A stretch of 59,782 nt of DNA, counting the filler, from Platydemus manokwari (Eukaryota): assembly GCA_037951405.1 (NCBI GenBank). It is 5 parts of 5 records of this genome, joined end to end, with 100 filler letters (N's around TTAATTAATTAA, not from the genome) between each part and the next. Parts side by side here need not be neighbours in the genome. Positions count along the whole stretch, not along the records: positions 11,649 to 27,892 come from JBBMOY011195876.1; 4 more parts are not named here. One strand, 5' to 3'. The notes under the pieces were generated by a model. That model saw nothing but the letters and a program-made list of their open reading frames with translations. It was not told the DNA's origin and did not search any database. Position 1 is the first letter of the stretch, and every line of letters starts with the position of its first letter. Below, in pieces: positions 11,649 to 27,892 of this stretch. A program made the position numbers and the translations under genes.

Positions 11649-11684
11649 CACCCAGGTTATTGTTGAGGGTTCATATTGTAATTG

Positions 11685-11795
11685 TTAATTGATAATCTGT
11701 AATCATTTTATTTAATTGATAATCTATAATCATTATATTTAATTGATAATCTGTAATCATTTTATTTATTTGATAATCATTGTAGTCATTTTATT
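11685..11795. repeat. 27-bp minisatellite, about 4 copies
   Basis: Unit TTAATTGATAATCTGTAATCATTTTAT repeated with few changes, next to a contig end. Confidence 0.8.
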
Positions 11796-13104
11796 TTTTC
11801 TATTATTGCTTTTGGATAATCAGTTTAATATATCTTGGATAATTATTGTTTATATTCTCAATAATTGAAAAGTATTTGATATACAAGTGTTGATGTTACT
11901 TTGGATAATTGATAATTGTTACTAGTACATAAATTATTTCCATCTGACAACTATTTATTTCATCTTAATATTTATACATTTGTAATTGTCTCAATTACAC
12001 CCAACCTAACCGAGTCAACGAGAAATCTAACGTAACAATACCCTTTGTTGAAGCTCCTTAAAGCCAGTGTAGAAATAAAATTCCAAAACCAACCAATATA
12101 ATTTAATAATCATACTACAACTCAATATTAAATTATCACTCAAGACGAAAGTCGAATACAGAATAGAAGGCAACCAAGAAGACTGCCTATCAGAAAACTC
12201 ACACAAAACTCACAGAACAGAATGAACGTTATCTATTAAAAAAGACTGGTAGTTGCTCGTGAAATCCAACTTCTTCATAGGCTTATTATATGTGCCCACT
12301 TAATGTCCCAGAGGTTAGTTTTTAATTTGATAAATTTGTTTATACATTGATAGAAATTTCTCTTACATTTCTCATACCATTGCCGAATATTGATGTTGGC
12401 TGTCATTTGTTGGTATGAACCAGTCGATTATTGATTTCTAAATACGCATTGATATATAGTGAGAATCTGATTGGCTATTGGCGCATGTGATTTTTAAATC
12501 TTCGTATCAACCCTATAAGGGTTATTACCATGGTTAAAGAGAATATTTTGGCTGTTTTTACGACCCACTCAACAGAAGAATTAAGCAATTCTGTTAACCC
12601 GTTGATATCAGATGGAAATTCTTAAATTAAGTGCTATAATTTGATAAATGGTGTATTCGAATCCAATATCACTTCACATAATTTCAGAATAAGTTACAAC
12701 TTTGGAATGAATTCTTGTTTTGTTCTCATTATGTGAGTGTCATATCATTTCCAATCTAGCGGATAATGTTATTTGTAAGCCTTAAATAAAAACGTAACAG
12801 TAAACAGTAGTTTTCTTGTTAAAATGAGATTGATTTGAAATTAGTTTGAAATTCGTATAAACGTAAGACTTAATTAATGGTCTGACATTTTAATTTATAA
12901 TTACATTATGTTTTAATTAAAAATTCATTATCGCTGGGATATTATTATCATTATTAATATTGTTTTACTATTATGACTTAATCATTATTTGAATTACATT
13001 TTCTCGATTTATATGATTTATATTTTTGGATGTTTCCTAATTCCATGATTTCGTTATAATATGTATTGTAATAAAATATTAAATATTTTTTTTAATTGGT
13101 TGAT

Positions 13105-13234
13105 TGTTTGGTCAAGCATAAAACAATGTTTGGTCAAGCATAAAACAATGTGCTAAACGATTGTTTGGTAAAGCATAAAACAATGTTTGGTAAAGCATAA
13201 ATCAATTTGCCGGTTGATTGCTTGGATAATGCAT
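13105..13234. repeat. 22-bp tandem repeat with a 57-bp higher-order period, upstream of the poly-UBL gene
   Basis: TGTTTGGT(C/A)AAGCATAAAACAA at 13105, 13127, 13162 and 13184, plus a degenerate copy at 13219. Confidence 0.85.
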
Positions 13235-13370
13235 TGTGTGGTATTTAATGGTGCTTGTATTGATCTTGTTTAAATCATTACAACGATTTATTGATTTACA
13301 ATTAATTTTTTGTTCAGATATGATATTATTATAGATTTCTGATAAAAATCAATTAAAATTCAGAATTCCT

Positions 13371-15357
13371 ATGCAAATAATTATCAAAAATAATGACGGT
13401 GAAATTGTTACATTGGAAATATGTCCAAAGGAGAATGTTCAAGAATTGAAATTAAAAATTCAAGCAAAGATTGGAACCCAACCAGATAAACAATGTTTGG
13501 TGTTTCAAGGAAGAACATTGAATGATGGGAGTACTTTGCAAGAAACAGGAATATGTGATCAATCTGTTATAAATTTGGTTAGAATTTTGAGGTAATGATA
13601 TGGTTTGAAATTATTTGGTATTTAATAATTGGTTACTACAGAGATGGATGGATACAAATATTTATTATGAATCTTAATGGAGAAATGATTTTGTTGGACA
13701 TACAGGAATCCATAACCGTCAAACAACTGAAATTAAAAATTCAAGAAAAAATCGGAATCAAACCAGAAGCACAAAGATTATCGTTTCAAGGAGGAGATTT
13801 AGCAGATGAGTGTACTGTGGAGGATTACAGAATATATGATCAGTCTGTAATCGATTTGGTTATTAAATTGAGGTGATGAATTGATTTGAGATGATTTGGC
13901 ATTCAATAATTGTGCATTACAGAGGTGATGCGATGGAAATATTTATTGAAACGTTGGATGGAAAACAATTTGCTTTGGAAATGTGCCAGTTGGATACGGT
14001 TCGGGAACTGAAATATGAAATTGAAAAAAAAATCAATGCCAGACCAGATGATCAAAAATTAGTTTTTAAAGGAGGAATATTAAAGGATGACGAGCGCACA
14101 TTGGATGAATGCGGAATACGCGATAAATCTGTGATAAATCTGGTGACGAGATTGAGGTGATTTGATGGTTTTGAGATGATTTATTGATTGATCACCACAG
14201 ACATGGTTGGATGCGCATCGTTGTCAAAGAGAGCGATAGAAAGGAGTTTCTGCTGGAAATCTCCCCGTTTCGCTCGATTGACGAGTTGAAATTAAAAATT
14301 CATGAAAAAATTGGAGCCAAACCGAAAACACAAAGATTAACATTTGACGGAAGAAAATTAGAAGATGGGCGTACGCTGGACGATTACGGAATATTGGATC
14401 GATCTGTGATCAATCTAACGGTTCAATTAAGGTGATTGTAAGGTTTGAGATGATTTGGCATTCAATAATTTCTCACCCCCAGACCTGGATGGATAAAAAT
14501 ATTGATTAAAACGCCTTATGGGAATGAGCTTGCGTTTGAGGTGCGCTCATTCGCGACTGTCAAGCAGCTGAAATTGAAAATAAAAGATAAACTCGGAATC
14601 GAGCCAGATGAACAACAGTTACGGTTTCAAAATCAAATATTGGATGATGAGAGCACTCTGGGGGAATGTGGAGTACGCCATCAATCAGTGATGCGTGTCT
14701 TTGGGAGATTGAGGTAGTGAGATGGTTTGAAATCATTTGGCAGTCAATAATTTGACATCACAGACCTGGATGGATAAAAGTATTGATTGCGAGCTTTTGT
14801 GGGAATGAGTTTGCATTTGAATTACGCCCACTCGAGACAGTCCAGCAGCTGAAATCGAAAATTCGGGATAAATTCGGAATCGAACCCCATGAACAACAGT
14901 TACGGTTTCAAGATCGAACATTGTACGATGAGTGTACTTTGGATGAGTATGAAATAAGCGATCTCTCTACGGTGAGTTTGGTTAGGAAAATGAGGTATTG
15001 ATTTTATGGGAGATTATTTGATATTTAATAATTGGTTACCATAGAGATGGCATTCAAATATTTGTCAAATGTTTTGATGGCAAAGTGATGGAAATTGAAA
15101 TAAATCCAGTGTTGAAGGTCCAGCAATTGAAATTGTTGATTCAAGCGGAAATCGGAATTGAACCAGACGATCAAACGTTAATGTTTCAAGGAACTACTGT
15201 GTTAACTGATGAGCACAGTTTGGAGCATTTCACAATAGGCGATCAGTCATGGTTAAATTTGACATTCCAATTAAGGTGATTGAAATGGTTTGAGAATGAT
15301 TTGGTATTTGATAATTTGCCATACAGGCCTGGAAACAACGAAATGAAACTCCCATGA
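13371..15357 (+). CDS. poly-ubiquitin-like protein with 7 divergent UBL domains, one per exon (about 546 aa)
   Basis: Exons 13371-13591, 13642-13872, 13923-14156, 14201-14431, 14483-14713, 14764-14994, 15045-15275 and 15327-15357 total 1641 nt in one open frame. All seven introns are 44-51 nt, GT..AG, phase 2 in the Arg74 codon. Domain 1 is 32/74 identical to ubiquitin by manual count. A phase-2 acceptor at 13363 may indicate a further upstream exon. Confidence 0.88.
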
Positions 15358-17300
15358 CTATTCGATTCTCTCGCAGATGAAAAATTGTGATTTGAAAACA
15401 CATTCGTTCAATTTGCCGAGAATCGCAAGTACACAAATGAATTCGGTTATTTTATTGGTGTATATGGTTTTAAAACATATGTCGTTGTGTAGCCAGAATG
15501 TGTGATTTTGGCTGGTGATTATTTATTTAAATTTTGTATTTTGACATTTCTCTGATCTCTGTACTTTGATTATTCATGTTTTTTCTGTTCTTATTATTAA
15601 ACATTTTGTACAGAATTTTGTTTTCGTTCAGTTCGTGGAAAAGAGTGAGATTAATAAATACGTCGAGTTTAAGCATAATTAGAATTTCACAAATATCTTT
15701 AGCTTTTTCTAGGTATTGCGATCCTAATGTTCACAAATCAATTGTACTGTGTTCCTAAATGTTTCGAAGTGCTGATGTTGGGGTTGTGGTTTTGTTTTCC
15801 AAATCATTTTGTAATTCCTGTATTATCGGTTGAAACGCAATGCCAATTCGGTAGGTGCGGGGATTAAAATAATTTGGTCAAAATAAATCAATAATCAAAA
15901 ACAAAGATAATGTCCAGATTTCATATTTGAATCTATTACAAATACTCAAAATCGTATGATATAATAATACAGAGGACAAATTCAAATCTCTATCTTTTAA
16001 GATACGGTTCCATTCAATCAGACTTAATTAATTTTCCAATCGCCTAAAATTACGATATTCCCCAGTCATACACTTTGATCTGATAACGAACCTGCTTTGT
16101 CATGAAAATATAGATTTTAATTATTGCAGATTTTATGTGAACGAAATTGTTAAATCATATTTCTTTACTTTTTTAAAGTTGTTCAATAATTCGGGTCTAG
16201 GACTTCTTTTGTAAACCTCCGTCTGAATTATTTTTTGTGAGTGAATTTTCCTACTGCTTACATACTGATTATGAATTATTTTTATTATTTTCTTTTTAAA
16301 ATTATTTTATAAATCCGCCTACATTAATAATTTTAATTTATTGTTCTCTCACAATAATTTGATTAAGTTTACATTTTAAATAATTTATATTTCACCCTCA
16401 TTTATAAATTTTATTATAATTTTATTCATTATTATTATTCTCAAAAATATAATTTTGCCCGCCATAGATTTTTATTATAATTATACAATAAATTTTATTC
16501 AACAAAATTTTTTTACATATTAAAAAATGAAATTATCAAAAAATACCTACATATAAATTGTATATATTTTATGCAAAAATGATCTCAAAAATCAGTGTCT
16601 ACTTTTCACTTGGATTGTAGCTTTTGTAGGCTTTGGTAAGAGATTTGGATTTGGGGTTGGTATCCTTCATTCTGAAGACTGAAGACGGGGATTGAGAAGA
16701 TGATTGAAGGTTGTTGAGATTTAAATGTTATCGATATCGTTATGATTATATAACGTCATTTGAAACATTAAATGAAACTAGATTTCTATCAATAGAACGT
16801 TTTCATTCTAAATTAACAGAAGAAATAAGGAAGGAAGGGATGCTGAAACGAAAGAAAATATGGGAAAGAGAAGACAAAATAGAACAAATATTAAAATAAT
16901 TCTTCAGAATTTGGGTACTTTTAATTTTTTTTCGAACGTATCTGCGTTTCAATGAATTCTTGTTCTCGTTAACCACCATTTATTTCACAATTACTTCTAC
17001 CCGGTTCGTTTAATTATGTCATATTAGCATTGTTTTAGATTTTTTCATTATAAGAATGTTTTGAAAATTTTAATTAAAGCTTGAAAATCATGATCAATTA
17101 TTTGCCTTTATTATAACAAGATTTATATATGTCCATTGTGGTGTTCATTAAATCGGTTGCAGAATTCTTAAATCAATAAATAAATTTTAAATACAAACCT
17201 TGTTTTAATAATAATAAAATTATAAAAATTATTTAAAATTATTTTCTTGGATATTTTCAAACCATGGGAATTTTAATGAAAATCTTATTGATTATAATAG

Positions 17301-17957
17301 ATGAAAATTAGTGTTACAATTAGAACGTTAAATGGTATGACGGAGGATGTTACCATTACAGAAAATACCACAGTTGCTCAATTAAAATTGAAAATTGAAA
17401 ATATTTTTGGATTGCGTCCGAAAGAACAAAGATTGTTGTTAAATGATATCGTTCTTCTCAAAGATGACGAAAAGGTTATTAATTGTGGAATCAAAAGCGG
17501 AACCATTATTAAATTGTCAATCGTTCCGGGGTATTCATTTGGTTTATAAATAAACATTTTCTGACATTATTTTATTGATTATAAAATATTGGTTTTTGAT
17601 TGGATTTAAAGTGTTGAATTATTGATAATGCGAGACGAATAATCAATAATATTTCACCGTTTTTTAAAAGTGTTTTGTATATTTTAAATTATGAGAATAA
17701 ATGAACCAGCTTAACTCGATTATTGATTGTAGTAAATTCAATTTGACAGTTAATCCATTGGATGGGCGTAATATTGATATTGAGGTGACATCAAATGAAT
17801 CCGTGGCTGATTTGAAATGCAAAATCGAGAAAATATGTTCAATACCGATTGATGAACAGGTTTTGTTGTATAAAGGCAATCCTCTCGATGACAAATGCTC
17901 ACTATCGAGTTCTGGAATCTATGATTACAGTGTTATTTGTCTGATTCCGAAATTAAG
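17301..17957 (+). CDS. two UBL-domain exons (either a di-UBL gene or the 5' part of a 6-UBL gene continuing at 20863)
   Basis: Exon 17301-17530 (MKISVTIRTLNG..QRLLL..IVPG), phase-2 intron 17531-17732, exon 17733-17957 (KFNLTVNPLDG..QVLLYKGNPLDD..PKLR) ending in a phase-2 donor AG|GT. The 3' end is unresolved: local acceptor at 17994 versus distal acceptor at 20862. Confidence 0.75.
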
Positions 17958-18202
17958 GTGGATTTATTATTTAGTGAAAATTATTTATTATTAGATCAAT
18001 AGCTGTTTTGTTTTAAAATTGATTTTATTGATTTTATAATTAATTTTGATATATTTAATACTTAAAACTAAACACAGGCGCATACACATATATCTGTGTT
18101 AAGCGATAATCGATGAAAAGTAAATGGCCAGATAAATTCCAATCAATCGATAAGTGAATTATGAAGTGTTTAATTCCATGTCATATAAGATTTTTAGTAT
18201 TA

Positions 18203-18369
18203 CAGTATTTCTCTTCCTAACCACCAATTCCTCTTAACTGCCACATTTTTCCAATAACAAAAAACAAGATTTTCTTTTGACTTTTTTCTTTATTATTTAT
18301 TTATCAAGAACTCTTAACCGCCACATTTTTGCAATTCCTCAAATGTGACGGTTAGGAGGAGAAATACAG
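18203..18369. mobile_element. pogo/Tigger-like MITE (167 bp)
   Basis: TIRs CAGTATTTCTCTTCCTAACC and GGTTAGGAGGAGAAATACAG, flanked by TA on both sides. Internal repeats of CTCTTAAC(T/C)GCCACATTTTT. Confidence 0.85.
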
Positions 18370-19989
18370 TAGTAAGACTAAACCCGCACATCGATAGATT
18401 ATTTGGTGGTTTAATCAATAATTCTTCAAAACTGTCTTTAATGTCATCGATTGAATTCTATAAGAATAATGTTTTCACCACGTAATTAGTTACCGATGGT
18501 GTTTGTGAACTTGTGATTTGATGTTACTAATAATATCTGACTGTTGCTAGCTAAATTCTCTACTCTATTTTCACCTTAATAGAAATTTTATTGCGCGTTT
18601 TAACATAAATGCAAATATGTTCGACCAATATTATTAGACTGAATAAAGACTTTATTTTTGCCAAGAATTTCTGCAATAATTGATACTAAAAATAGCAATT
18701 GAGAAATGTGATCTTTATATTGAAGTGGTCTGAAATTAATATTAATTCTTGGAACTAATGAAATCCGATCCTTGTCAAAAAAGGTCTTTCTGTCTTTGGA
18801 CTTCAATATATATAAATGTTTAAAATCAATAAAAGATCACCCCACAGGTAACTTTATTAATGGTGAAAACATATCTGGAAATTTACTGGGATTTGGCCCA
18901 GAATTAGAAATTTATTTCTCTGAAAACTCGGTATCGTGAATAGATTAATTGATTTGCCCAATAATAATCTTGAAACATAATTGATTTGAGTGCTCGTGGA
19001 TGACTAATATTCGGTAAGCGAAATTTAAATATCTTTGTCAGGCGTCCAAATCTCTGATATTGTTGGGAATTCTGTGTTGTTTTTATCTTCTAATTTCCTT
19101 CTTAATTTCTTTTCGTTGCCTTGGAAATGTTTTGTTGTCATGGGATTTATATTTCTAAATTATAAGTTTTTTTCTGTTATAGAATTCATTGCAGTCAACT
19201 CCGATCAATTATTCTTCAATAAAAGCACAATCCAATAATTTGAATCGATTGTTTCTGTTTTCAAAGAGAATTAAAGTTCACATTGATCGTTAAATTTTGT
19301 TTTTAATTTAGTTTTCCTTTTCGTGCTTGAGTTGTTTAAGCTATCTGGTAATTATGTTCTAGCCTGTTGCGACTTAATTATCGATTAATTACTTGAAGAA
19401 ACAAGTCGAATTCTTGCTAAATAATATCTCCATTATTTCTGCTTCATTTGATATTTTTATTCAGATTTGTTTCGTGACTTTATATGATAAAATCTTCGGG
19501 ATTCATTTCTATAAAAGATATTTTGTAAGTGGCTATAGGGGTATCCCTAATTCAACTATTGACAGTTCTCATAAGTAATCCACTGCTAGACAGGTTTCGT
19601 AATCCTTTATACTAATTATTTTACGAGAAGATGAAGATCATTTCGTTCATGCTCACATTCAATCCCAATTGGCCGAGGGACATGTTGAAACGGCATTTCG
19701 GTTTCATATTATTTAGCCAAAAGGAAACTCATTTTGTCACAATTAATTCAACTTTAACCCAGAGAAAATTTGCTGACATAGACATTATGTGATTAGATAA
19801 GTGGAAGGATTTTTGTTGATTTCATTGTCTTCAGTAAAATACACGCACTTGACCAGAGAATAGATCATTTGGATTACAGAAATGTGCTTAAATTATATTG
19901 TAAAGATTTTAATGTAATAAGTTTCGAAAAATATTTATTTATAATCGACGTATTCTCAAGACTGATCTCTAAATCACAATACATTAAAC

Positions 19990-20341
19990 CAGTGGTCTTC
20001 ACACGTTTTGTGTTGCGACCCACTTTACGAATCTAAAATTTTCGCGACCCCTAGGAACTAAAATAAAAATAATAAAAACAATTTTTTTAATACATTTTTT
20101 TTAACACCAAAAAATTGAAATATATTTAATAATAACGACGATTTTGCATACTCTGGCATAAAATATCAAATTTTAGCTCTATTTCGGTGATGGCTGATGT
20201 CGGTACTAATTCCACATCTTTAAAATTCGATCGATATTTTGTCTTAATATAAGTCAGTGTCGAAAATGAAATTTCTCGCGACCCCCAAAAAACTTTTCAC
20301 AACCCACTGGTGGGTCGCGCGTCCCATTTTAAAGAACTCTG
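19990..20341 (-). mobile_element. non-autonomous hAT (Charlie/Buster-type) element
   Basis: Ends CAGTGGTCTTC and AAAGAACTCTG, subterminal GCGACCC repeats, 8-bp TSD CATTAAAC/CATTAATT (6/8). The minus strand encodes a Buster-type transposase C-terminus EISFSTLTYIKTKYRSNFKDVE..EIELKFDILC. Confidence 0.85.
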
Positions 20342-20862
20342 CATTAATTTATCCTATAATTATCGATATTATTATGAAAATCATTATTCAACCGACCTGT
20401 TAGTAACCCACGAAAATATGGAATAATTGACTAAGGAAACCTGTTGTACTGCTTTATACTGCAAGAATTGCTGGGGGAATGCATATTTATTGATATATTG
20501 ACTTTCACTGGATTCGAATCATTAATAATAGCATAGTTATTATAGCAACAAATATTGATTCATTTATTGATAATTTGTGATATTATTTCGTGTTACAATA
20601 AGCTTTTTAATAAAAGCGTGATTTTAAGAATCATAACTAAGTCTAGTGTTGTTAAATCGGCAACACTGTGCCCATTAATGTTTATTAAATTCGAAATGTT
20701 CGAGACATTTTAAATTTATGTAATATTTTTAAACCATCACGTGTCTGAAGATTTCCAGTGTAAATTGGTAATCGATTGAGCCATTTCTACTATATTTATA
20801 TGTGAAAAACAGCTCAGTTTTCAATTTTCTGATAATCAATAAGTATTTTATTGAAATATTAG

Positions 20863-21927
20863 CAATAAGACTCAAGTACGCGCCAAAACATTAGACGGTA
20901 AAATCGTGGCATTGGAGATTAATGAAAACAAGACGATTCGTGACTTGAAAATGGAAATTCAAGGAAAATTAGGATTAGATCCTGATGATCAAATATTGAT
21001 TTTACTCGGAGCCATTTTAGATGATGTTGAAATGGTGGATGCTTGTGGCATCAATAGTGATTCGGTGATTAATATAATTGTTAAATCTAGGTATTGATTT
21101 GATGATATACAACTTTTTAATTTGTGGAATACAAATTCAGATTTATACAGATCCGCGTCAAAACATTGAAAGGAGAAGTTATTAAATTGGAAATCAATAA
21201 AAAATGGACAATTCGTGATTTAAAAATTGAAATTGAAAAGAAATTGAAAATAAATCCCGACGATCAAAGATTGGTGTTTGAAGGATATCTTTTAGAAGAT
21301 GAAAAATTGGTGGACGAATGTGGAATCTATAATGGATCAGTTGTTAATGCCATTGTAAAAATAGCGTAAGGAAATATTATTGGATTCGTGATAAATAATT
21401 ATTGTCGCGAAAATTGTAGAAATAAAATACGATTGTATATCAAACCGTTGAAAGGAGAAAAACTCCCATTTGAAATTTTGAAAAATTCAACTATTCGTGA
21501 CATAAAATTGAAAATCCAAGAGAAATTGAAACACGATCCCTATGATCAGAGATTAATATTTCAAGGCAAGCTTTTGGAGGATGGTAAATCGTTGGATGAT
21601 TATGGAATCGATGACCAATCGGTGATTAATGCAGTCTTTGTATTTAGGTAACGATTTGACATTATGTGACGAGAAGAAATTATTTCGGTATTATCGATTA
21701 TTTTCAGCTTATACATCCAGATGTTCGATGGTATGAGGCATAAAATTGAAATTCCTAAATATTACACTATTGGGATCTTGAAATTAAAAATCCAAGATGA
21801 ATTAAATTTTCATTCAGATGAGCAAAAATTAATTTTTCAAGGTCATGTTTTAATCGATAATCAATCAATAATAGATTGTCAATTGAAAAGTGGGTCGATA
21901 ATTCAACTGGTGAAATGCACAAAGTAA
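20863..21927 (+). CDS. four UBL-domain exons (3' part of a second poly-UBL gene)
   Basis: Exons 20863-21090, 21141-21365, 21420-21647 and 21708-21927; phase-2 introns of 50, 54 and 60 nt; open when spliced. The first exon starts at a phase-2 acceptor with no Met at the domain start, so an upstream exon is likely needed. The third domain is closest to ubiquitin (QRLIFQGKLLEDGKSLDDYGI). Confidence 0.85.
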
Positions 21928-22134
21928 TCAATTATTCTATATTTCAATTGATTATTGTGTTTATTGATTATTTATTGAATCGTTTCATTATTTAAAAATT
22001 TTGTACTTTCAAATAAAGCTGCTTGTTGATGTGGGATGATATGTTATGAAATATTGCTTTAAATTATTGAAAAATGAATAATAGTGTGTCCATCGATGTG
22101 TGATGAATTGTTGTTGTCAGTGTCACAATCAATC

Positions 22135-22602
22135 AGTAGTTGATAATAAAATTGACTGGTGGATGTGTGAGTTTGAATTCATCAGTGACCAAATTATGCA
22201 CTGCTGGACTCGAGATCCAATCGCGTACTGATGATTATTAACGAATTTATCTATCGGAGAACTACCTGTTGTGATCGATAATGTTTCAATCAATAAATTC
22301 TGATTAAACCACAAATTTGTATTAACAATTTAAGCTTAATGATTATTCATTAAATCGATAAATAATTATTGATATTCTTTACATTTTTAGAGAGTGATAA
22401 ATGGATCTCGAATTTAACGTCACTGAAACAATAAGCAAGATCCAGGGAAATATGAAAACGAATATCGGAAATTATTGATTATTTTCTTTTATGAACCATT
22501 TTTAAAAGATTGCCATCCCATTTTATTGGTAAATAATTCTCAAGAAATATCCCATACCGTATTAAGATGGAATGAAATAATAGATCCGAGAATTATATTT
22601 TA
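22135..22602 (+). pseudogene. about two decayed UBL exons trailing the array
   Basis: Frameshifted UBL-like fragments LEIQSRTDDY*RIYL and MDLEFNVTETISKIQGNMKTNIG..LIIFF..FLKD..HTVLR. The spacer between them ends in TTTTTAG at 22390 and shares GATAAATAATTATTG (22357-22371) with the intron sequence at 21390-21404. Confidence 0.45.
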
Positions 22603-24653
22603 ATTTATATTATAATTATATTATTCAGAACAATCGATAATAAAAATGTTATTCAATTACAATCTTTGAACATTTTCCTTCTCGATTTTACATTTTTTGA
22701 AATTTATTTTGTTTTTTGGATTCTGGATTTCTCCAGTTATTTTATGCCTTCATATCGGCATAATCTCAATGATATTTGACTAAAATACAATAAAATCAAT
22801 CTTGGTTTCGTTTGTCTTATTGATAATTTTTTGTGTGAGGTTATAATTCACATAATTTGAGATTGTACTGATTTGTGTTTGGTTTGTTTAATCGAAATAG
22901 AAATTGTTAAATATCTGGGATGAAATTAAGAAAAAGGGACCTTTGACCTACTTTCGTAATGATGAATTTTCGCGCATGAGATAATTTTATAATTTAATTT
23001 TATAAATAATTGCGATGTTTGATTTATTCGTGCAATTCAGTTGATATCTCACATTTGTAGAATGTCGAATAGGGACAAGTTCCTATCCTAATCAGATCAC
23101 TTCTAGGATTCTTTTATTTTGTAAATTTAAATTTATTTAATTATAAATCAACATAGGAAACTCATGACATGTTTAATAGAATGATAATACTTGTTTCTAA
23201 CAGATGGTTGTAAAAATACAAAATATCACTCAATTTGCTTCTAAGATTAAAAAAAGAAGTCCCCGCAAGTTTTCAATAAATTACAATTCGACCTACTTTG
23301 ATCCGTTTTTTACATGATCCAATTCTATGTGTTTTCGAAGCTCTCGTTTATTTAATATTTGATTTCAAACAAATAAAGTTCTTGATTACTTAAATAAAAA
23401 TTAAAAAAAAATAAAAAATCCTAAAGTATTATCTGATAAAAATTTTGTCTATTCCACTAAATAATTTAAAATTGCATTTCTTGTCTACCAGTTAAGGAAT
23501 TTTATTTCAGTTTGTTACTTACCCAATAAAATTTGTAATCAACCCTAGGTTGTTATCATTAATATTATTATTTATATTATTTACAGTGCAAGCATTGTAT
23601 ACCGCCGTCATTATCAAAGTTGGTGTCTAAATTATTGTTGGGACCTACGCTTAAATTATGGTCCTTATTATCAGTGAGGATATTGAAACCAATTAGCATT
23701 TGAATGATCATTTTAAATATAAAATATATTGATATTCAGTAATGTATATTATCGATTTAATTTTTTGAATATCATGCTAGCTATATTTTCGAAACTAAAC
23801 TTAGAATGATTAATGAGTGTCTTTTTACTGTTGATTAGTTTACCAACTAGAACGAAAAAGGAAATATTGATTCAGCAATAAACACGCTTAGATAAATTTG
23901 CTCATGAAGCTGATGAGTGACTTCAAATTAAGAACTTTTTTACATTTAAGCTGATAGAGATAGATATTCTATTGAAAGTAGATGCGTGCCTGCTGTGGAA
24001 GGAGTGTGGTAAAGATAAGGAATGCAACAGCCAACGATTACATAGAATTTTGGTTCTATGAGACGTTCATTAGGATAGAAGCAGGATTAAAAATATCGTA
24101 TATTCGTAAATCCAACAATTTGTTTTATAGTAATTAAAAATCTTTTTAAATAAGGCGGAGTTAAGATTTAAACTCATTCTAGAAAAGTTAAATATTTTAT
24201 TTCGGGCATTGTCTTCATACTAAGCTCATAAAATCGTTGCAATATCTAGTGATGTAGAAGAGATAATCTTATTTTTAAAATATCGATAACTTTAATTATC
24301 GATTAATAAAATCAATAATCACCAAAGGATTATTTCAGTGAAACAAACAAAATTTAATTAACATCATAATTATAGTGAGAAACGTTTCTAAACGATATGT
24401 AAAACGAAGCTGCAGCTGGACACACAAATTTAAAATCAGTATCTTTATTGGGGTTGAAAAAATAACTAAATTGAACCAACTTTTTATTATTCTGTGTGAC
24501 GACAGGCATTGAACATTTGCTATATTGATTAATTTTTATTATATTCTTTTATGTTGGATTAGACCAATATTAATTTTTTTTATAATATGACAATTCATGT
24601 TTAATAAAAATGATATTTATAAAATAATACATTGCGATTCATAAGTCACCGTC

Positions 24654-25143
24654 TCTAAAACTAAAATAAAACAAGAATATTTGAAAGGTTTTATTTTTTA
24701 CTTTGTGAAGTCACGAACACTCGTGCAGTTTCTTGTTGATTTGTGCCATCTTTCTCTTTTACAAAATTTACCACCTTTTCCTTCATGATTTCATCAGACG
24801 GTCTTCTTGATCGCAACCTAGTGGATAAGTTTCCAGTTTATTCAAACTTCTGTTTCCAGTATTGCATTGTTGTCTTATCTGATGGTGGATAATTGTAATG
24901 TTGCTGAAATTCTTGGCAAGCTTCGGCACTACTCTGGTACATCATTGAATAACTAACTATAAACACTATTCGCAAGCAAAAATTTAACATCACCAACTGT
25001 TTCTGCTATATTTTAATAATGGAACTCATTAATAAGAAATAAGAAATAAAACACATTAATCAGTGAATAATAATGAATATCAATAAGTATAAATATGTGA
25101 GTATAAATTATATTGTGTTTTGTTGTTTTATTTTAGTTTTAGA
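24654..25143 (-). mobile_element. internally deleted Tc1/mariner-superfamily transposon
   Basis: Perfect 21-bp inverted repeats at 24654-24674 and 25123-25143. The minus strand (24990 to about 24700) encodes an N-terminal HTH region, RIVFIVSY..EFQQHYNYPPSDKTTMQYWKQKFE*TGN..RSRRP, with an internal stop. Confidence 0.8.
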
Positions 25144-25699
25144 AATTGAAAGACAGATTTAAAATTTTTTTTAAATATTCTTACTATTTTTAATAGCCAT
25201 TGATTATTTAACTTTCAATATTTTTGAAAACAAAATCTTATTGATAAAGGGTGATAATCGATTTTCGTACTTAATAGGTTCCGAGATTGAAAATGGAAGT
25301 CGAAACGTGACATAAAAAAGAACAATGAAAAAAGAAGTATTTTAAAAACATTATTTTTCTAAAACATGTATTAACATGCATTGATAAATAAACATGTTAT
25401 TGATTATGATCTGGTGTTTTATTTATCAATTGAACTTCATTAAATTATATTACTCACAATTTTATCGGTTCATATTGATTTGATCTCATTGATAAATTCA
25501 CTACTAAATATGTGTGAAATATGGATTTGTATGACAATCAGGGACAGACTAAATATTTTAATCAATAATTAATTTTTTAAATGTTACGAAAACATTTTAA
25601 AATTTATATTAGCAACATTATTGAAACAATATAATCACCCTTCAAGAAAATATGCGACAAACAATTAACGTCATTGAAGATAAACATAACATAATACTG

Positions 25700-26005
25700 A
25701 TAAAATGCATGATAATAATAATCGTAAAAATAATTATCAGTATTTTAAAATCAACTGTGATAATAATAATGGCCATAAATAATTGTAACAGAAGAATCAA
25801 TAATAATAATAATAGTGAGAATAATAATAATAATAATGATGGTAACTATAACCACAATAATAATGTTATAATAGTCATAATACTCTTAATAATAATTATG
25901 ATAATGTCAATGATGATAATATTGGTGGTGATAATAATAATTGTAATAATAATGTTAATAATAAAAAATAATAATTATTATAATTAAATAAAGATGATAA
26001 TGATA
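25700..26005. repeat. degenerate (AAT)n microsatellite / low-complexity tract
   Basis: Runs of AATAATAAT with scattered substitutions. Confidence 0.85.
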
Positions 26006-26196
26006 TGCACACCATTATTTTTCAAACAGCATTTCAAGCAAAATTAGATTTCACCAAGAAATTTGATTGTAACCTCGACATCATCCCCTAAATATGGAAT
26101 TAAGAAATATATAAAAATTCCAATAACAAAATTAAAATTTCCCCAAAAGACTCTTATATATTAGGCAATATAATTGTTTATAAACTCAAAATTAAC

Positions 26197-26577
26197 TTTA
26201 AATTTAACGTTGTCAAAGTCCACTAGGTGAGGTGTATCACAAACCGAAAGAATTTCAATTCCTAATTGGCCAGAAGCGCCCATTCCAAATGTATAAAGCT
26301 CCCCTGATGCAGTCACAACAGCACTGTGCATATGACCACAATCACCCTGAGATGAATTTTTATTTTTAAAACACTGATTCCATTATTATTTATACCATAA
26401 TTGCACCTTTGCCTCTAAGAGTTTCTACTAACTTCGGCTTTTTCAAAGTGGTTGCATGTCCATGACCCAATTTTCCATAAGATCCTATACCCCAAGTGAA
26501 AACCTCTCCAAATGAAGTAATAGCCATGATATGACTTTCCGGACCACGAGATGCCGCTACGAAAGTTACTTTGTAAT
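26197..26577 (-). CDS. RCC1-repeat (RLD) exons, HERC1-like E3 ligase fragment
   Basis: Exons 26577-26396 and 26346-26197 (49-nt intron) encode YKVTFVAASRGPESHIMAITSFGEVFTWGIGSYGKLGHGHATTLKKPKLVETLRGKGAIM|GDCGHMHSAVVTASGELYTFGMGASGQLG. This resembles HERC1 RLD1 as I recall it (SSSKGSDGHTLAFTTEGEVFSWGDGDYGKLGHG). Neighbouring exons were not found. Confidence 0.78.
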
Positions 26578-27398
26578 CTGAAAATATTATGAAAACAAAT
26601 CCTTAAACAATTAATAATATATACCTATTAATATAAACCTATATAATATTATAACAATACGGCATATTATCTTTTAATAATACATATGTTTTCAAAAATT
26701 CATATATAAAAGATAGGGATTGAACTAAATAAATTAGGGGATTATTTAATGTAATCGTTTAATATTCAACAATACTTCTACATCAAAATTATTGATTTCA
26801 TAGTGTGAAGTTTATTTGAAGATACGATAAATAATTAAAATTTACGAACGATTAAAATTATTAAAAATTGAGCCAAAAAATATTTTTACAAAATTATATT
26901 AAAAATTCATATAGCATATCAATATTTATAAAAGGATCTTGCTTAAAAAATACTGTTAAACTCTCAGTTTTAAAATTATTATAATTATTAAAATTATTAA
27001 AGATAAAATTCAAATCTTTTACAAAAATAAGATGTAATATAAATAAATCTGGGCATATTTATATTTGGATGAAGACAAATCAGGTGGAAATAAATTTAAA
27101 TTTAATATTTAAAATTGTTTTGAAAATTGATGAATTGGCGAACAATTTTTTGTTTTATTGTGAACATGACTTTTGATTTGAATATCAAGAATGAAGAAAT
27201 TTCGGTAACTAACACCTGGACTGCAAAAATATCGGTGATTCAAGAAAATATGATGAAAATAAATCAGGAAATATCTAATATCAAATAATTGAGATAATTA
27301 ATGAATAATAGGGGCTAAATGATTGTCATCATAAATATAAATATTTCTTTAAATAAAATCGAAAATATTTCATTGATTGCAACCTTAGTATACCTGTC

Positions 27399-27710
27399 CA
27401 TTGTTGAGGAACTATATCACGGAGCCGACCAAATTTTATAAAAATATTCGGGACCGGAGCCAAAAGAAAACTTAAATATTGAAGCGACTCCTACCATTTA
27501 TATAACTGCTACCCAAGGCTTGACATAAGATTTTTCTTAAAGTTCAAACTATTTTTAAGGATATCTTAGCCCGGATGAGTGCTAAATAATCTAACTGGTA
27601 CACAACTGACTGTATAAAAAAATTTCTTTCAAAGTTATTTTAATATTTTTATTTAGTTTTATAATATCGGATCCGGAGTCACATTGATTTCGTTCATTCC
27701 TTCCAGCCCT
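27399..27710. mobile_element. possible degenerate hAT-type MITE
   Basis: Clustered GGAGCC/GGAGTC/GACTCC subterminal-type motifs and a right end TTCCAGCCCT in AT-rich context. The left end is poorly conserved. Confidence 0.3.
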
Positions 27711-27892
27711 TATGTTCATGCCTGAATGTATAAGATTTGAAAGCCTACGTTAATCTTTATGTATTTATAAATCATGATTTAATTCTAAATTATCTTTGTG
27801 AAAATATATAATAGAACATAATTTTGTATTGATCTAGATTAGACATGAATAATTCGGTAACAATGATTCGTAAATAATTAAAATTAATCATA

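Follow-up and report, generated by a model that had tools for sequence, protein, structure and literature searches.

A predicted seven-domain poly-ubiquitin-like gene, built one domain per exon, and its multigene family in a Platydemus manokwari assembly

We find that positions 13371-15357 (+ strand) of the window, the whole 59,782-nt stretch of DNA analysed (five joined parts of the Platydemus manokwari assembly GCA_037951405.1, filler included), very likely constitute a gene that codes for protein in the nuclear genome of a short-intron, AT-rich eukaryote; its predicted product is a 546-residue string of seven divergent ubiquitin-like (UBL) domains encoded one per exon. The gene belongs to a UBL family that is real, large and undescribed, with an odd intron signature; the fold itself is ordinary and similar architectures occur elsewhere. 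With a probability of roughly 60% for gene structure and mode of action combined, we favor the reading that it encodes a non-cleavable, non-conjugatable, multivalent poly-UBL scaffold. The mode of action taken by itself, in which an unprocessed and unconjugated protein would engage several partners non-covalently, is put forward tentatively and may well be wrong.

Gene model and splicing

Seven stop-bounded open reading frames (ORFs) lie on the + strand between 13371 and 15357, each ending a few bases past an AG/GT, with re-entry into the following ORF after a YAG 44-51 nt downstream. The original prediction took these ORFs to be exons of one frame of about 546 amino acids (aa), in units of about 231 nt of exon and 50 nt of intron that split the codon for Arg74, and this holds in every particular. 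A continuous 546-aa frame appears only once seven GT-AG introns are removed, which leaves 546 codons and a stop in a 1641-nt spliced coding sequence, with eight exons of 221, 231, 234, 231, 231, 231, 231 and 31 nt separated by phase-2 introns of 50, 50, 44, 51, 50, 50 and 51 nt. All seven introns split the Arg74-equivalent codon (ubiquitin numbering) after its second base, AG/R; all seven UBL exons are open, all 14 splice-site dinucleotides are intact, and such a pattern cannot be chance. The HMMER check against the ubiquitin family that had been proposed gives matches of 7/7 domains to Pfam family PF00240 at 50.5-73.5 bits (cut-off, 25.4), with ubiquitin-clan models the only Pfam families matched in the exons.

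Exon 1 (13371..13591) supplies the ATG and domain 1 (d1, 74 aa; 66.8 bits) and ends in the AG of the split Arg74 codon, followed by intron 1 (13592..13641), which carries a motif shared by family introns. Exon 2 (13642..13872) encodes d2 (77 aa; 64.6 bits), and intron 2 (13873..13922) has a GT donor here, while at least six paralogues show a GC donor in the equivalent intron. Exon 3 (13923..14156) encodes d3 (78 aa), which is better conserved across the family than any other domain and gives the best match to PF00240 (73.5 bits); intron 3 (14157..14200), at 44 nt, is of a short type common to the paralogues. Exon 4 (14201..14431; d4, 62.4 bits) is followed by intron 4 (14432..14482), which holds an exact copy of the 29-nt family motif, exon 5 (14483..14713; d5, 58.3 bits) by intron 5 (14714..14763), exon 6 (14764..14994; d6) by intron 6 (14995..15044), and exon 7 (15045..15275; d7, 50.5 bits) by intron 7 (15276..15326), retention of which would place a stop right after the Arg (AGG TGA). 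Exon 8 (15327..15357) adds a 9-aa tail, PGNNEMKLP, and the stop codon. The usual terminal domain of the family is missing from this gene, and 3'UTR-like sequence follows the tail, so that this copy is atypical at its 3' end; exon 8 has the look of a remnant stump from a terminal UBL exon that was lost, fused to the 3' untranslated region (3'UTR) of the family.

Comparison among paralogues supports the predicted splicing. In a scan of the assembly (911 Mb, 1.99 million contigs), PF00240 is matched at least 150 times. Most of these matches recur about every 280 nt in arrays spread over many contigs, and such arrays contain about 135 diverged UBL exons. In the window and 15 other contigs, 59 of 63 inter-domain junctions are bridged stop-free by a phase-2 intron of 40-76 nt; a canonical polyubiquitin locus in the same assembly (L011:4182-4859), intron-free, with LRGG/M junctions and three units at 114 bits each, was excluded from this survey. 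The bridging introns are GT-AG in 53/59 cases and GC-AG in the other six, all of the latter before an exon of the domain-3 type, where at least six paralogues read AAG/GCAATGA...CAG. These GC-AG introns lie at L001:3181-3230, L003:2319-2369, L004:546-595 and L008:6826-6875 and, in minus-strand arrays, at L005 3391-3440 and L007 2530-2580 (reverse-complement coordinates). A frame kept despite varying intron length, together with a GC-AG intron fixed in position, is the trace that real splicing leaves.

Domains, junctions and the predicted product

The 546-aa product consists of seven head-to-tail ubiquitin folds, with no linker domains and no signal peptide. Pairwise identity between domains of the gene is 35-55% (27/77 to 42/77), and each domain is 35-46% identical to ubiquitin (26-34/74); the counts first reported for d1 against d2 (37/74) and against ubiquitin (32/74) are exact. 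An AlphaFold2 model of domain 3, built from an alignment of 14 family members, has a predicted local distance difference test score of 93.2 and adopts the beta-grasp fold, superposing on ubiquitin in Foldseek with a TM-score of 0.91 and a root-mean-square deviation of 1.2-1.6 Å at 40-43% identity; the sequence matches in the PDB are likewise ubiquitin, with E values of about 1e-12.

The junctions between domains read LR-DGW-I, LR-GDA-M, LR-HGW-M, LR-PGW-I, LR-PGW-I, MR-DG-I and finally LR-PGNNEMKLP-stop. LRGG is retained at none of the seven, and a GG after the junction residue occurs at 0/7 junctions of this gene and 3/59 across the family. At position 75 stands D, H, P or G, and Gly76 is usually followed by an additional Trp; of the 59 junctions in the family, 38 are spanned by Arg, 27 have Gly at +2 and 25 have Trp at +3. 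The product ends in ...QLRPGNNEMKLP, or in ...QLR if intron 7 is retained, in both cases without GG, and the terminal domains of paralogues run straight into a stop (e.g., ...VIDLVS-stop), also without LRGG. The exposed C-terminal Gly-Gly of conjugatable modifiers such as ubiquitin, NEDD8, ISG15 and FAT10 is accordingly lacking. Ubiquitin-specific proteases and E1 enzymes need Gly75-Gly76, and because this pair is lost at the junctions and at the end, we infer that the 546-aa product is neither processed to monomers nor conjugated.

The same junctions could be read the other way, as sites at which a dedicated protease cuts LR-x-G to release seven free UBLs, some perhaps conjugated or secreted. 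The head-to-tail layout and the remnant L73-R74-x-G76 do recall polyubiquitin, and the frequencies of Arg across the junction and of Gly at +2 fit such a site; the replacement of Gly75, the usual insertion of Trp after Gly76, the rarity of GG and the terminal domains without GG speak against it, the Arg codon is in any case fixed by the AG/GT donor, and we see no protease or E1/E2-like gene beside the arrays examined, where ORFs of at least 90 aa were read by eye without a family search. We regard a cleaved precursor as improbable.

Alignment of 76 family domains to ubiquitin separates a conserved interior from a variable exterior. The conserved core columns are I3, V5, L15, I/V23, L26, I30, L43, F45, L50, L56, I61, I67 and L69, and K27, K29, Q41, G47, D52, S65 and R74 are conserved as well. 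The surface by which ubiquitin is recognized is among the most variable parts of the alignment (L8, I44, H68, V70, R42 and R72), with column entropies of 2.3-3.2 bits at L8, I44, H68, V70 and R42; the position of K48 holds G, R or E, and that of K63 is Asp in 78% of the domains. Three roles were suggested when the gene was first noted, those of a scaffold, an immune effector and a ubiquitin-chain mimic, and these surfaces bear on the last. If it imitated linear (Met1-linked) polyubiquitin, the protein would bind ubiquitin receptors of the proteasome or of signaling pathways, or serve as a decoy for pathogen deubiquitinases; its layout has the geometry of a linear chain, linear chains of two and four ubiquitins can be superposed on the model of domain 3, and the protein is predicted to be uncleavable. 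Lack of conservation in the L8/I44/H68/V70 patch and at K48 and K63 nevertheless weakens the suggestion; the extra residue at most junctions also alters the spacing between domains, and we now consider chain mimicry very unlikely.

A scaffold that is neither cut nor conjugated remains the reading we prefer for the product. It would stay a cytosolic string of about 60 kDa, made of seven beta-grasp modules, and would act by non-covalent, multivalent binding, with domain 3, nearly constant among paralogues, as a common anchor and the faster-diverging domains as variable binding surfaces.

Family history, selection and intron signals

A maximum-likelihood tree of the 76 family domains and ubiquitin groups domains by position in the array rather than by gene, with support in the Shimodaira-Hasegawa-like approximate likelihood ratio test (SH-aLRT) of 94 for d1, 97 for d2, 97 for d3, 94 for d4 and 88 for a clade of last domains. 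Domains cluster by position, and therefore a multi-domain ancestor gene was copied whole. Within the array, d5 and d6 are sisters (SH-aLRT 95; 42/77 aa identical), and a tandem-repeat search (TRF) finds a 281-nt period there with 76% matches; exon 6 is a recent tandem duplicate of exon 5, that is, of one exon-plus-intron unit. The original prediction of a lineage-specific multi-UBL family made by serial exon-plus-intron duplication is thus supported, the duplication being directly visible in the d5/d6 pair and its period; most of the diversity, as the positional clades show, arose through whole-gene duplication of an ancestor that already had several domains. That this is one multi-exon poly-UBL gene in a multigene family is borne out, and our searches of protein sets and metagenome contigs turned up no close relatives.

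The nearest paralogue copies share 85-89% of their amino acids with d3, whereas the figure is 60-67% for d1, d2 and d4 and drops to about 50% in d5-d7. Domain 3 is 71-89% identical across 12 other intact copies; in the assembly, 13 copies of this domain are intact and 3 contain stops, a birth-and-death pattern. Relative to positional homologues, the ratio of nonsynonymous to synonymous substitution (dN/dS) is 0.47 (95% confidence interval, 0.33-0.69; 298 codons), and 0 of 1000 bootstraps reached 1. Strong positive selection was considered and rejected, with per-exon values of 0.16-0.62.

Could the array be a decaying offshoot of polyubiquitin, a pseudogene that only looks intact? The copy at 13371-15357 ends in a stump where its relatives have a terminal domain, broken members exist (3 of 16 domain-3 copies and 6 of 150 PF00240 matches contain internal stops), the arrays adjoin transposon-like fragments, and the only public run that contains the locus is DNA. 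Set against this are the open exons and intact splice sites of the gene, an upper bound on dN/dS of 0.69, a hydrophobic core conserved over 76 domains, and a frame kept at 59 of 63 family junctions though introns vary from 40 to 76 nt. On balance we think decay a poor explanation, with little chance of being correct.

Several observations nonetheless weigh against the scaffold reading. A dN/dS of 0.47 indicates moderate constraint only, and this copy, without its terminal domain, could be a recently disabled member of the family. The conservation of Arg74 may reflect the AG/GT splice signal rather than protein function. In the sole public run, contigs cover exons and introns alike, with 0 differences and a depth of 13-16. 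The assembly, moreover, is a mixture of animals, because no fewer than four distinct animal COX1 genes occur in it at full length (C1514745, which is L017; C1389203, L018; C1344449, L019; and C1440324), all of which read cleanly with the invertebrate mitochondrial code (code 5, TGA = Trp); L017 and L018 are 80% identical in nucleotide sequence, and L019, arthropod-like in look, is 71% identical to both. For this reason, some of the "paralogues" may be allelic variants, or orthologues contributed by co-assembled species. That one genome contains paralogues is certain all the same, because the window contig alone has three different arrays.

Conservation is higher in the introns than at silent sites. 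Pairwise identity among the seven introns of the gene averages 69% (mean proportion of differing sites, p, 0.31), compared with p = 0.46 at fourfold-degenerate sites of aa-identical codons in the same exons (random expectation, 0.70); the synonymous proportion pS of the exons by the NG86 method is 0.34-0.69. This points to an unrecognized splicing or regulatory signal. A 29-nt family intron motif, GGTTTGAGATGATTTGGCATTCAATAATT, has 30 matches with at most 3 mismatches in the assembly and 0 for a reversed control, apparently always within UBL arrays: in introns 1, 2, 4, 5 and 7 of this gene and in L001, L003, L004, L007, L008 and others. The 3' half of the motif, TTCAATAAT, lies about 17 nt from the AG and may serve as the branch site. 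We obtain no consensus RNA structure for the motif with RNAalifold, and an Rfam search of the contig part 11649-27892 gives no match.

Such a signal would suit a cassette gene, in which motif-guided exon skipping or intron retention yields isoforms that differ in the number and order of domains, an arrangement compatible with the scaffold reading. The six internal exons are symmetric (231 or 234 nt, multiples of 3, with phase-2 introns on both sides), a retained intron would end the frame immediately past Arg74 at 49 of 59 junctions, and both the excess conservation of the introns and the recurrence of their motif would be expected. The absence of a consensus RNA structure counts against it, and the stop just past the donor arises automatically, because AG/GTRA stands in phase 2. 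The segment 12720-12760 is complementary to the motif (-25.5 kcal/mol, versus -22.8 for the best of 50 shuffles) and was considered as a Dscam-like docking site; it is rejected for now because no conserved counterpart exists up- or downstream of 8 paralogues. No UBL relics flank it. Regulated use of the exons as cassettes is in our estimate unlikely.

Returning to the scaffold, the family may have begun with a polyubiquitin-type ancestor in which one unit gained an intron in the Arg74 codon; tandem duplication of the exon-plus-intron unit would then have produced a multi-domain gene that was copied many times, with copies still being gained and broken. A bolder proposal makes the whole family a diversified recognition system, with a constant d3 anchor, rapidly diverging modules, gain and loss of copies, and an intron motif that controls inclusion of the symmetric exons. 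We hold this to be a long shot; if true, the family would be a repertoire of multivalent poly-UBL binders directed, for example, against pathogens or toward proteostasis under stress. Ubiquitin folds are normally processed modifiers or single adaptor modules, and here is a gene family made only of five to eight different ones, which it seems are neither set free nor attached to other proteins. It offers a natural experiment in which the ubiquitin fold is re-used as a repeat scaffold with its surfaces set free, and a clean example of duplication of an exon-plus-intron unit followed by gene amplification. What makes it worthwhile is that it defines a family open to testing; it does not demonstrate a mechanism.

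Known ubiquitin-like systems and the surroundings of the gene

The closest known architecture is polyubiquitin of the UBB/UBC/UBI4 type, which shares the head-to-tail arrangement of ubiquitin folds of about 76 aa without linker domains; the gene at 13371-15357 keeps the L73-R74-x-G76 remnant, and ubiquitin is its best match in both sequence and structure. The units of polyubiquitin are identical or nearly so, whereas those of this gene are as divergent as described above; LRGG is lost at every junction and an intron sits at every unit boundary, while the L011 array is intron-free; the I44 patch has gone, along with K48 and K63; and the paralogous genes are numerous, where polyubiquitin has one to a few. 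The gene thus departs from a polyubiquitin precursor in every defining respect (repeat identity, LRGG, freedom from introns) and at the same time clearly belongs to the ubiquitin fold family.

In ISG15 and FAT10, two domains are followed by a C-terminal (LR)GG through which the protein is conjugated. The predicted product resembles them in joining divergent ubiquitin folds in tandem within one uncleaved polypeptide, but has seven domains and no terminal GG, and no specific sequence relationship to either is seen. It likewise lacks the combination of a UBL with a UBA or other effector domain that characterizes UBL-UBA shuttle factors such as Rad23, Dsk2 and Ddi1. The UBQ7/8/9-type polyubiquitin-like genes of Arabidopsis, credited to Callis et al. 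(1995), also derive from polyubiquitin and have diverged repeats, which reportedly depart from ubiquitin at only a few positions; we mention them as a lead only.

Searches for relatives found no close one. A word-indexed protein search with the exon-3 ORF finds none, a scan of JGI metagenomes with the domain-3 alignment yields 242 pattern matches of which 0 were confirmed, and phmmer against 1.84 billion representative proteins finds nothing closer than ubiquitin (42%). A review of the beta-grasp fold (PMC1949818) does not treat divergent UBL proteins with more than two domains, and our search of the literature on such proteins found no paper. The phmmer matches do include unnamed public proteins with 8-19 divergent UBL repeats, among them P0001, a JGI model of 1527 aa and 19 repeats from Pseudo-nitzschia multiseries. 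P0008, P0011, P0015, P0040 and P0064, from ENA contigs of 4.7-595 kb, are uncharacterized proteins with 8-12 partly decayed ubiquitin repeats. These long proteins share with the present gene the divergent head-to-tail repeats and the loss of GG at many junctions, but are only 27-37% identical to its family, versus 42% for ubiquitin, and retain stretches that resemble ubiquitin, for example IQDKEGIPPDQQRLIF; they probably arose where polyubiquitin decayed or expanded independently. Divergent polyubiquitin-like proteins seem widespread and unstudied. The description of the locus as the best candidate for an undescribed system was too strong, given that proteins of 8-19 divergent repeats are already in public sets and that no partner enzymes were seen by eye beside the arrays; the family itself, as stated at the outset, is undescribed.

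The gene lies in the window part 11649-27892 (JBBMOY011195876.1), which is AT-rich (24-37% GC), and has UBL neighbors on the same strand. Downstream are a single-UBL ORF of 82 aa from a more diverged subfamily (17301..17549), a second single-UBL exon that ends in AAG/GT (LR) and may be followed by a short tail exon (17701..17958), and a four-domain array (20873..21927) with three phase-2 introns at 21091-21140, 21366-21419 and 21648-21707; we looked for a start codon at the 5' end of this array and found none. The claim of 13 intact UBL domains in under 9 kb is confirmed, as 7 + 2 + 4 domains lie within 8.6 kb (13371-21927).

Directly before the start codon, at 13353-13373, stands AAATTCAG/AGTTCCAATG, which is conserved in nine family members and occurs at the equivalent place in L001, L002, L006, L007, L008, L012 and L013. 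It looks like a 3' splice acceptor, which would belong either to an intron in the 5' untranslated region, as in polyubiquitin genes, or to a trans-splice site. A further conserved element, GATTTATAATAAGAAT, lies about 45 nt upstream of this putative acceptor. At 13098-13234, 140-270 nt 5' of the ATG, is a tandem repeat with a 22-nt unit, TGTTTGGTAAAGCATAAAACAA (alternatively, a 57-nt period), each unit of which contains AACAATG; the repeat is absent upstream of paralogues.

ORFs that, as judged by eye, resemble fragments of reverse transcriptase and integrase adjoin UBL arrays at L003:4113-5723, L007:5970-6972 and L014:712-1077, all on the minus strand, which suggests transposon-rich surroundings. 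Farther along the window contig, 25652-25987 holds an AAT microsatellite and an Asn-rich low-complexity ORF (TRF period 3, 63 copies), and at 26164-26602, on the opposite (-) strand, an unrelated gene is represented by two ORFs of exon size that carry RCC1 repeats (Atlas score against RCC1 clusters, 0.98).

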